Of a stretch of 32,000 nt of DNA, positions 6,094-8,480 are shown in pieces. How positions within the stretch are numbered: position 1 is the first letter of the stretch; every line of letters begins with the position of its first letter. The position numbers and the translations under genes were made by a program. This stretch comes from Zygophlyctis sp. KS116 (lineage: Eukaryota > Fungi > Chytridiomycota). The notes beneath the pieces are model-generated. The model saw nothing but the letters and a program-made list of their open reading frames with translations, was not told the DNA's origin and searched no databases. Location of the stretch: positions 1 to 32,000 of the forward strand of contig BAAFSQ010000016.1 in the NCBI GenBank assembly GCA_054661495.1, in the 5' to 3' direction.

Positions 6094-7567
6094 GCGCGCA
6101 GTTTCGCTAATGAAAACGCTGGTGATTGTTGATCAGGAGACAAAAGAGCAGCTAGAATTACCAGTTGAACAAGACACTGTCAAATCGTCTGGATTCGAGA
6201 GCTGGGGGCTATCTATCTACGACAATGGATATCTAAATACTGCTGTTTGTCGCTCTAAAATCTCGTATATTGACGGTGACAGAGGAATTCTTCGATATCG
6301 TGGGTATGATATTGAAGACTTGGCCGAACATTCAAACTTTTTAGAAGTCTCTTATCTGCTTTTGTATGGAGAGTTGCCCTCTCCAGAACAGCAAGATGTC
6401 TGGACTACGAGGGTCTTGAGGCATACATATAGTATTATTTTATTGATATTTTAATTTATTAGTTCATGAAAATATGGTTAATTATCTCAAAAGTTTTAGA
6501 TATGATGCTCATCCAATGGGAATGTTGATTTCTTCTATTTGTGCAATGTCAACGTTTCATCCAGAGGCAAGTACAGCGTTGCAAGGCCCTGATATCTACC
6601 AGGAAGAGTCAATGGTCAATAAGCAGATATTTAGATGTTTGGGTAAAATACCTACTCTTGCTGCTTGTGCTTATAGGCATCGGATTGGTAGACCGTATAA
6701 TACTCCCTCAAATGATTTGGGATATACAGAAAATTTTTTGTATATGTTGGATAGATTGTCAGAGACTAATTATAAGCCTAATCCAAAATTGACAAGAGCT
6801 TTAGATGTTATTTTCATACTTCATGCAGATCGTAAGTTTATGTTTGATTAAAGAAAATAGATGAATTAAATTGTTCAACTGCAGCAATGCGACAATTAGC
6901 ATCAACTGGAGTCGATCCATTTATTTGTTTAACTGGAGCTGCGGGTGCTCTTTATGGTCCTTCGCATGGTGGTGCAAATGAGGCTGCGCTTAAAATGCTT
7001 GAAGAAATTGGTTCTGTTGAAAATATTCCAGAATTCATTCAAGATGTAAAAGCTAAAAAACGAAGATTGATGGGGTTCGGACATCGTATCTACAAGTCTT
7101 ATGATCCAAGAGCAAAGATTTTAAAAAAGATTGCAGGACAAGTATTTGAAATTATGGGAAGAAATCCAATAATTGATGTTGCTGTTGAATTGGAGCGAAT
7201 AGCCTTGAGTGATGGTAATTTTAAACTTTTTAAATTTGGTAGAATATTTTATTAAACGAAACTTGTACCCAAATGTTGATTTTTACTCTGGAATCATTTA
7301 TAAAGCCATGGGATTCCCGGTAATTCCTAAAGAACTTATTTCTAGACCGACTTTTTCCCAGTTTTATTCTGTTTAGCACGAACTGCAGGCTGGCTTGCTC
7401 ATTGGAAAGAGCAGCTTCACGATCCTTCACCAATCTTTCGCCCTTTTCAGCATAGTTTAGTAACAAAAAAGGATTTTGTACCAATTATTGAACGTCCGAA
7501 TTCAAGTGGTCAGTCTGTACAAGATCTTTTAGAAAAGCAAAGTGCTAGAAAATGTTTAAGAAAATGA
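6092..7567 (+). CDS. Citrate synthase, bacterial/glyoxysomal-type; start at 6092 or 6110; introns 6432-6462, 6832-6860, 7215-7242, 7320-7345
   Basis: [57 protein letters not shown] and [10 protein letters not shown] after splicing. Confidence 0.93.
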
Positions 7568-7611: not shown

Positions 7612-7893
7612 ATGTGGAAATCAACGACTGGAACAACTACTTTAACTCCATCAGCAAAATCCAATGATGATGATTGGGAAACTGATCCCAACTACGTTAA
7701 TGATGTTTCTGAAAAAGACCAACGTTGGGCAGCAGGATCTAAAGAACCTACCAATATCGTCCCAGTAAATTTACATAAACTATCTCAACAAGTCATAAAT
7801 CAGAATGAAATAGACAGTAAAAAGAATTGGGAAATTCTCAATGGAAAAGACATTAAAAACAGTTATGGAGTAGAAAAAAATAAAAAGATTTAA
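7612..7893 (+). CDS. Stand-alone cortactin/HS1 N-terminal acidic (NTA) domain protein, 93 aa
   Basis: MWK...DDDWETDPNYVNDVSEKDQRWA...VNLHKL...SYG, compared with recalled cortactin MWK...[21 protein letters not shown]...INIHKL...GYG. Confidence 0.85.
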   Translation: MWKSTTGTTTLTPSAKSNDDDWETDPNYVNDVSEKDQRWAAGSKEPTNIVPVNLHKLSQQVINQNEIDSKKNWEILNGKDIKNSYGVEKNKKI

Positions 7894-8480
7894 ATTACTT
7901 TTAAATCTGCCATTAAAATCCCAATAATATTTCCTACTTGAGCCCCCAAAACTATAGGAATTGGCCATTTCTAGAATTACCTAAATTATAATAATTACCT
8001 GCCAATCTCTTTGCCAATCTAAAGGATGAACAATTGGTGCTATAATACTACATACCAATGTAGAATAAAACAAAATCTGATACCGTTTACTCTTAATCTC
8101 TAATCTTGTAGAAATCATTGACATCCATCCATCCCTTTTAAATCCAAATTCTAGAGCAGCAGGAAAGAATACCAAGAGACTTAAGTACAAGGAAGCGTAA
8201 ACAGCAGCCTCCATCTTGTCCATTGTTACACCAAATAAAATCATAATGCAAAGTATTCCTATTGACCCAATAACAGATGATATTCCAGCGATTCCCCATC
8301 TCTTAAATTCCTAAAATAAATACATTAAAGTACAAAAATATAAATTAGTCCGTAACTAGAGAGTAAATACAAAATATTCTCTTTTAGAGATTGTAGAGGG
8401 AATTTAAAGAAATTACAAGGGAATATCCAGCAAGACAAGAGAATGCAACAAATTCTCAAGAGCGACTGGTAAACTGACAT
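7890..8480 (-). CDS. GPI11: GPI biosynthesis protein PIG-F/Gpi11; introns 8311-8333 (23 nt) and 7971-7998
   Basis: Hydrophobic protein with ILFG; PLDWQRDWQKWPIP is restored by splicing. Confidence 0.88.

Follow-up and report, generated by a model that had tools for sequence, protein, structure and literature searches.

A predicted NtA-only cortactin homologue in a chytrid fungus, belonging to a widespread group of short cortactin-family proteins

We analysed a window of 32,000 nucleotides from the beginning of contig BAAFSQ010000016.1 of the chytrid fungus Zygophlyctis sp. KS116, in which an intronless open reading frame (ORF) of 93 codons plus a TAA stop (7891-7893) is placed between a citrate synthase gene and the convergent gene for PIG-F, with a methyltransferase gene following (Table 1). 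Relatives as distant as 52% identity retain this gene order, and the PIG-F neighbour is also found in the relatives' contigs L002 and L027. On the upstream side, the 44 nt that follow the citrate synthase stop appear, as read from the sequence, to be the sole room for a 5′ UTR or promoter. On the downstream side, the initial annotation had described the stop codon of the ORF as overlapping that of PIG-F, and this is borne out, as both stops are contained in one TTAA with the PIG-F TAA at 7890-7892 on the minus strand, so that each 3′ UTR must enter the coding exon of the other gene. PIG-F itself was matched by PF06699 with 37.4 bits over profile positions 81-162 and 17.4 bits over 162-182. Its last exon, 7890-7970 when the stop is included, extends (7893-7970, minus strand) to position 182 of the 183 in the profile, and the exon upstream of it (7984-8244) is given provisionally, as an ORF counted from its first ATG. 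The intron between the two, read by eye from the sequence, is about 28 nt long (approximately 7971-7998). The citrate synthase gene has an intron of 28 nt (7215-7242), also read by eye, and a GT..AG intron of 31 nt (6432-6462) that is removed in a metatranscriptome contig.

Table 1. Features of the locus, with positions counted from the first nucleotide of the window
Feature	Position	Strand	Basis or remark
Spacer of 44 nt from the citrate synthase stop (TGA 7565-7567) to the start codon	7568..7611	+	Read from sequence
NtA-only cortactin homologue of 93 aa, complete intronless CDS (predicted)	7612..7893	+	ORF list, PDB cortactin match, orthologues, dN/dS
Residues 1-19: conserved MWKS start, then variable Ser/Thr-rich linker	7612..7668	+	
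Residues 20-29, DDWETDPNYV: inverted acidic domain, W22 being the Arp3-pocket tryptophan	7669..7698	+	Cortactin alignment
Residues 30-53: NDVSEKDQRW block and variable stretch	7699..7770	+	Equivalent to the cortactin segment meandering over Arp3
Residues 54-76: predicted amphipathic alpha-helix	7771..7839	+	AlphaFold2, cortactin helix I55-T76
Residues 77-93: conserved tail NGKDIKNSYGV and Lys-rich end	7840..7890	+	Stub of cortactin repeat 1 start
TTAA with both convergent stop codons (mini-cortactin TAA, +; PIG-F TAA, -)	7890..7893	.	Sequence, minus-strand translation
PIG-F (neighbour, outside the system), last two exons	7890..8244	-	Pfam PF06699

When compared with all chain sequences of the PDB by phmmer, the ORF product matched cortactin alone (8tah_H, E=1.8e-13; 8p94_I, E=4.8e-13), residues 1-86 of the query aligning with cortactin 1-85, which upholds the initial reading of the ORF as a close match to the cortactin/HS1 N-terminus. 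The same comparison with 1.84 billion representative proteins gave 185 matches at E<=1e-3, all of those inspected being cortactin/HS1 or short relatives, and true cortactins were found at E values of ~1e-10 to 1e-9 in this 1.8-billion-protein library. Judged by these alignments, chance likeness to cortactin is excluded. Pfam gave no match to the ORF at E<=10, including to HS1_rep, clathrin light chain, Arpin and the WASP-family models, a result that is uninformative rather than negative because Pfam holds no NtA model. The MWK start of the protein is common to animal cortactin, an N-terminal acidic region with DDW at residues 20-22 is present, and eight of the ten residues of DDWETDPNYV are identical to cortactin D20-V29, which are the only residues visible bound to Arp3 in 8TAH (PMC10613254). 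Among close orthologues M1, W2, K3, S4, T5 and G7 are invariant, as is the whole of N77-V87, and across 37 aligned family members (alignment A2) W22, N30, E34 and Y85 are invariant and D25, P26, Q37, R38, W39 and G86 nearly so. The protein ends 8 residues past an SYG that aligns with the GYG(G) opening cortactin repeat 1, in agreement with the initial annotation, which had placed its end near the start of the first repeat.

Comparison with known Arp2/3 ligands places the chytrid protein next to a part of cortactin rather than the whole. Cortactin (CTTN) and HS1 (HCLS1) of Holozoa, as seen in 8TAH and 8P94, have in common with it the MWK start, DDWETDP with W22, NDVSEKxQRW, the helix at 54-76 (predicted in the chytrid protein) and a YG at the repeat-1 boundary, whereas the 37-residue repeats, the helical/proline-rich region and the SH3 of cortactin are all missing. 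Indeed, tandem 37-residue HS1/cortactin repeats (PF02218) are absent from the 93-aa protein at Pfam E<=10, and so is a C-terminal SH3, the protein being without any Pfam domain. Full-length cortactin bridges Arp3 to the daughter filament (PMC11102864), which the chytrid protein, having no repeats, cannot do. The mammalian NtA fragments Cort1-76 and cortactin 1-84 are of near-equal length and carry the same elements, making the chytrid protein their natural counterpart, with the differences that it is a gene product under selection and that it has a conserved extra tail, residues 77-93, which Cort1-76 lacks. Arpin and the A tails of the WASP family carry, like a cortactin-type NtA, a single-Trp acidic motif directed at the same Arp3 pocket, but they are unrelated in sequence, and their motif is C-terminal and binds with the opposite polarity (PMC10613254). 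The acidic motif of the chytrid protein is N-terminal instead, and neither an Arpin (UPF0552) fold nor a WH2 + C + A module was found in it at Pfam E<=10, the WH2 and the C helix both being missing.

Orthologues and substitution patterns indicate that the ORF is a genuine, complete, single-exon gene under purifying selection. A search of 5.8 billion proteins returned eight orthologues with 65-97% identity, seven of them 93-96 aa long and one a gene call of 134 aa, and all eight have the MWKS start, the same tail and the same stop position. Pairwise dN/dS among six orthologous coding sequences is 0.06-0.25, with dS ranging from 0.4 to saturation (>1). A near-identical strain from another lake metagenome differs at four sites in the ORF, of which two are synonymous and in conserved parts and two are replacements (A15V, K16N) in the variable linker. 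In the whole assembly there is no second NtA copy, making the gene single copy, and no HS1/cortactin repeat above the Pfam cut-off, which answers the suggestion that this genome be checked for a separate HS1-repeat gene. The assembly's sole HS1_rep match, of 17.7 bits (L005), falls within a coiled-coil protein, and we discarded it as spurious. The initial proposal of an NtA-only cortactin protein in a fungus is thus sustained, by orthologues that end at the same place and by a genome without an HS1-repeat gene.

We considered whether the ORF could instead be an annotation artefact, either the opening exon of a cortactin gene that is longer and has its repeats and SH3 elsewhere, or a decaying remnant, and find this highly improbable. 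Many of the short matches in databases come from animal cortactin genes, as first exons or as fragments, and no RNA contig falls on 7612-7893 in two metatranscriptomes, one of which has two citrate synthase contigs and the other no matching contig at all, both of which would fit such an artefact. A first exon or a remnant would not be expected to keep its stop position and tail in all orthologues or to be under purifying selection across its whole length, and the DNA downstream is PIG-F coding region on the opposite strand, in a genome that offers neither an HS1_rep above the cut-off nor a second NtA copy for such a gene. Transcriptome-derived ORFs of 96-101 aa from Amoebozoa, two of which were checked and are labelled 'ORF type:complete', argue in the same direction. 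The length of the protein had also been attributed to the overlap with PIG-F, beyond which it could not extend, and this explanation fails. On contig L027 a gap of ~97 nt separates the 52%-identical orthologue from the nearest gene call for PIG-F, yet its protein end is the same, so the overlap is not the cause of the short protein; furthermore, the proteins of named chytrids are of the same length.

The assembly (12.7 Mb in 1175 contigs), whose DNA occurs in freshwater metagenomes, contains at least 7 chitin synthase loci and a gene for a radial spoke head protein, whose presence implies a flagellum, and the nearest named relatives of the 93-aa protein are chytrids. The machinery on which a cortactin-type NtA acts is also present, as actin, Arp1, Arp2 (contig C124), Arp3 (contig C31), ARPC2 and ARPC4 are all encoded. 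A WASP-type gene with WH1, CRIB and polyproline exons is found on contig C107:1-2792 (L022; minus strand, 699-1343), where the contig end precedes the expected WH2/C/A end. The Arp3 gene (L015) is split into many exons of ~50-95 codons each and was searched exon by exon. Fregoso et al. describe ten basic residues of Arp3 that surround the acidic-domain pocket for cortactin W22 (PMC10613254), and of the nine that were checked, on two Arp3 exons, eight are kept as K/R, the equivalent of R230 being Met.

The initial annotation proposed that a profile match be sought in other lineages. A profile search with the 37 members of alignment A2 gave 661 matches which, with the 185 from phmmer, are distributed across fungi, amoebae and holozoans, and the protein is therefore not a one-off but part of a widespread family, some members of which annotation pipelines already auto-name 'cortactin' or 'HS1' / 'Hematopoietic lineage cell-specific protein'. 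Within these matches we recognise an NtA-only short family, delimited in this analysis and not curated, of proteins that are 80-105 aa long, carry the NtA core (W22, N30, E34, Q37, R38, W39) and end no more than about 10 residues from the YG, as the 93-aa protein does. In Chytridiomycota, where Spizellomycetales and Chytridiales are among the orders with short members, NtA-only proteins of 80-100 aa are encoded by Batrachochytrium dendrobatidis, B. salamandrivorans, Gorgonomyces, Synchytrium, Fimicolochytrium, Geranomyces, Thoreauomyces, Gaertneriomyces and Blyttiomyces, some gene calls being longer at the N-terminus. Those of Chytridiales (Chytriomyces, Obelidium and Physocladia; P0219, P0229, P0234) are 80-83 aa long, start with MPPK or MQRK rather than MWK, have no YG tail and end in RRKEYQTP, and by their sequence they appear to be a further reduced variant. 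The UniRef name 'Clathrin light chain' given to the B. salamandrivorans member (P0163) is likely a misannotation, its homologue in the window having no such Pfam match.

NtA-only proteins of 94-103 aa are likewise found in Amoebozoa, in Dictyostelium discoideum (DDB_G0288379), Polysphondylium, Acytostelium, Heterostelium, Synstelium, Balamuthia, Stereomyxa, Ceratiomyxa, Flamella and Planopodium. These start with MSVY and end in LYGGERAA, and several of them are the transcriptome-derived ORFs mentioned above, which provide expression evidence for the short NtA family. The D. discoideum member (P0237; 96 aa) carries Phe at the site of the key Trp (DDDDDF-ETDP), a position at which other dictyostelids keep Trp. 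A member catalogued under a green alga and found in its transcriptome (Chloroparvula/Chloropicon, MMETSP1310, P0230) has the amoebozoan MSVY form and probably reflects amoeba contamination of the culture; we do not count it as evidence from plants. Longer architectures also occur. Gonapodya, Blastocladiella emersonii, Catenaria and Olpidium (among P0048, P0189, P0232, P0246 and P0208) have an NtA followed by about one HS1 repeat and no SH3, the apusomonad Thecamonas has an NtA with an SH3, and ichthyosporeans and animals combine the NtA with one or more repeats, a coiled coil and an SH3. The B. britannica member is trimmed to GYGGAYGVEKKK. Set side by side, the one-repeat forms of Gonapodya, Blastocladiella, Catenaria and Olpidium and the chytrid forms make up a gradation that leads to the chytrid stub.

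Structure prediction by AlphaFold2 with the 37-sequence alignment gave a chain of mostly low confidence (mean pLDDT 66) and one confident helix, at residues 54-76 (block pLDDT 85-90), which coincides with the Arp3-binding helix 55-76 of cortactin. Liu et al. report that cortactin meanders over the Arp3 surface at approximately residues 21-54 and that its helix I55-T76 lies in the hydrophobic cleft of activated Arp3, beside the daughter filament's first subunit (PMC11102864), and the predicted pattern of the chytrid protein is the pattern that they describe for the cortactin NtA. Because the Arp3 gene of this genome is divided into many small exons, co-folding used an intronless Arp3 gene from a metagenome contig (L028:77-1336) that is 60-83% identical to four aligned Arp3 exon ORFs of the assembly. 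With this Arp3, which is from another organism, the chytrid protein reached an ipSAE of 0.53 (0.52-0.54 over three runs), where the best of three controls scored 0.01, a result rated as weak support, with contacts agreeing between runs at 39% or more and a partner pLDDT of at least 43. In calibration 51 of 78 solved complexes and 2 of 108 mismatched pairs attained the mark, and scores of 0.60 or less were obtained by 5 of the 78 solved complexes, yet by all four of the mismatches that passed. As the pairing resembles the cortactin-Arp2/3 complex already solved, the pass may come from the memory of the model, and it speaks for likeness without being proof of binding.

We propose a model for the chytrid protein that fits both these observations and those in the literature, in which it is probably a free-standing protein that binds activated Arp3, acts as a co-activator together with WASP/SCAR and has a mild stabilising effect on branch junctions. 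The basic pocket that lies between subdomains 3 and 4 of Arp3, and that the acidic tails of WASP/SCAR also use, would receive W22 with the acidic residues on either side of it, and helix 54-76 would occupy the barbed-end cleft of activated Arp3. Alone the protein would have no nucleating activity, in the presence of WASP-family factors it would enhance nucleation, and branch junctions would be modestly protected by it. We infer Arp3 binding and the direction of its effect in this model, the homology, completeness, purifying selection, wide spread and partner machinery being observed. As the protein has no filament tether, it is expected to behave as the mammalian NtA fragment does in vitro. 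In Cort1-76 the binding to Arp2/3 goes through D20-V29; the fragment neither binds F-actin nor activates when alone (PMC10613254), and it does not shift Arp2/3 in solution to the short-pitch state (PMC10613254). It synergises with WCA, most of all with dimeric WCA, and for this residues 1-17 and 34-76 are both needed (PMC10613254). Furthermore, the NtA alone guards branches from dissociation, to a lesser extent than full-length cortactin (PMC11102864). The chytrid protein has kept each of these elements, namely its MWK start, an acidic domain and the predicted helix. Its strictly conserved tail is found at the position where cortactin repeat 1 starts contacting the first daughter actin subunit (PMC11102864), and residues 77-87 of this tail, which have no counterpart in the fragments assayed in vitro, may add an activity that those fragments do not predict. 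Counting against the model are the Met at the R230 equivalent of Arp3, the Phe that replaces Trp in the D. discoideum member, the metatranscriptomes that gave no contig on the gene although one of them covers the spliced citrate synthase, and the weak rating of the co-fold.

The same pocket allows for the opposite effect. An Arp3 binder whose main effect is competitive inhibition or buffering, in the manner of Arpin, would fill the acidic pocket, block the delivery of actin by WASP/SCAR and damp branching. The cortactin acidic domain does occupy the same Arp3 site as the acidic tails of NPFs and Arpin (PMC10613254), VCA would be sterically blocked by NtA binding (PMC11102864), and a protein with no F-actin tether is without the recruitment route of co-activation. 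We nevertheless judge inhibition unlikely, as Cort1-76 raises polymerisation in the presence of NPFs (PMC10613254) and the NtA alone protects branches (PMC11102864), and as the helix at 54-76 and the MWK start, which synergy needs beyond pocket binding, are both conserved. Distinct from both of these is the idea that the main partner in fungi and amoebae is something other than Arp2/3 and that common descent alone accounts for the likeness to cortactin. The tail NGKDIKNSYGV is conserved beyond the need of the known Arp3 contacts, the D. discoideum member has DDF and not DDW, and in one database the B. salamandrivorans member bears the name 'clathrin light chain', each of which could be taken to indicate another partner. 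This is less probable still, since the best-conserved positions (W22, D25, P26, N30, E34, Q37, R38, W39) make up the Arp3-binding stretch, the co-fold controls scored 0.00-0.01, and no clathrin light chain or other Pfam match appears at E<=10. Co-activation with WASP/SCAR through activated Arp3 is the reading we prefer.

In the literature cortactin has been described as restricted to metazoans, in a 2005 paper (PMC554100), and as restricted to holozoans, in papers of 2013 and 2016 (PMC3748353, PMC4824007). The word 'cortactin' is absent from a preprint survey of chytrid actin regulators, and a search of the literature for cortactin together with chytrid, fungal or amoebozoan terms yielded as its sole trace a 'cortactin' table entry for a Blastocladiella EST from 2006 (PMC1550239). 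DDB_G0288379 is not named in the literature searched. The homology of the short members is thus visible in databases, by their automatic names, and undiscussed in the papers found.

The initial annotation further proposed that the NtA predates the animal-fungal split as an independent module, and the two parts of this proposal fare differently. Its age is well supported by the distribution of the sequences, given the members in Amoebozoa and in an apusomonad. Independence is only one reading, with Thecamonas combining NtA and SH3 and with fungi that have one repeat. On their sequences, the short forms of Amoebozoa favour a short ancestor, whereas the Thecamonas NtA + SH3 protein and the fungal gradation from one repeat through a stub to none speak for secondary trimming in fungi, so that the chytrid short form may itself be secondarily trimmed. 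In a more far-reaching scenario, which we regard as possible though rather doubtful, an NtA protein of ~95 residues would be the ancestral branch-junction regulator of Arp2/3 in Amorphea, from which holozoan cortactin would have arisen by tandem amplification of the C-terminal YGG tail into F-actin-binding repeats and by fusion to SH3, with the short form being an as yet unstudied regulator of Arp2/3 in Dictyostelium pseudopods and chytrid zoospores.

The chytrid gene described here is, as its sequence places it, one member of a widespread and undescribed short branch of the cortactin family. Such proteins offer a natural test case for the live dispute over what the NtA does alone, whether it displaces NPFs or stabilises the active conformation of Arp2/3 (PMC10613254). 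As members are present in tractable organisms, in D. discoideum as DDB_G0288379 and in Batrachochytrium, knockouts and imaging are feasible. Finally, the conservation of NtA-only proteins from amoebae to zoosporic fungi sets the origin of the Arp3-binding module back to the ancestor that Amoebozoa and opisthokonts share.
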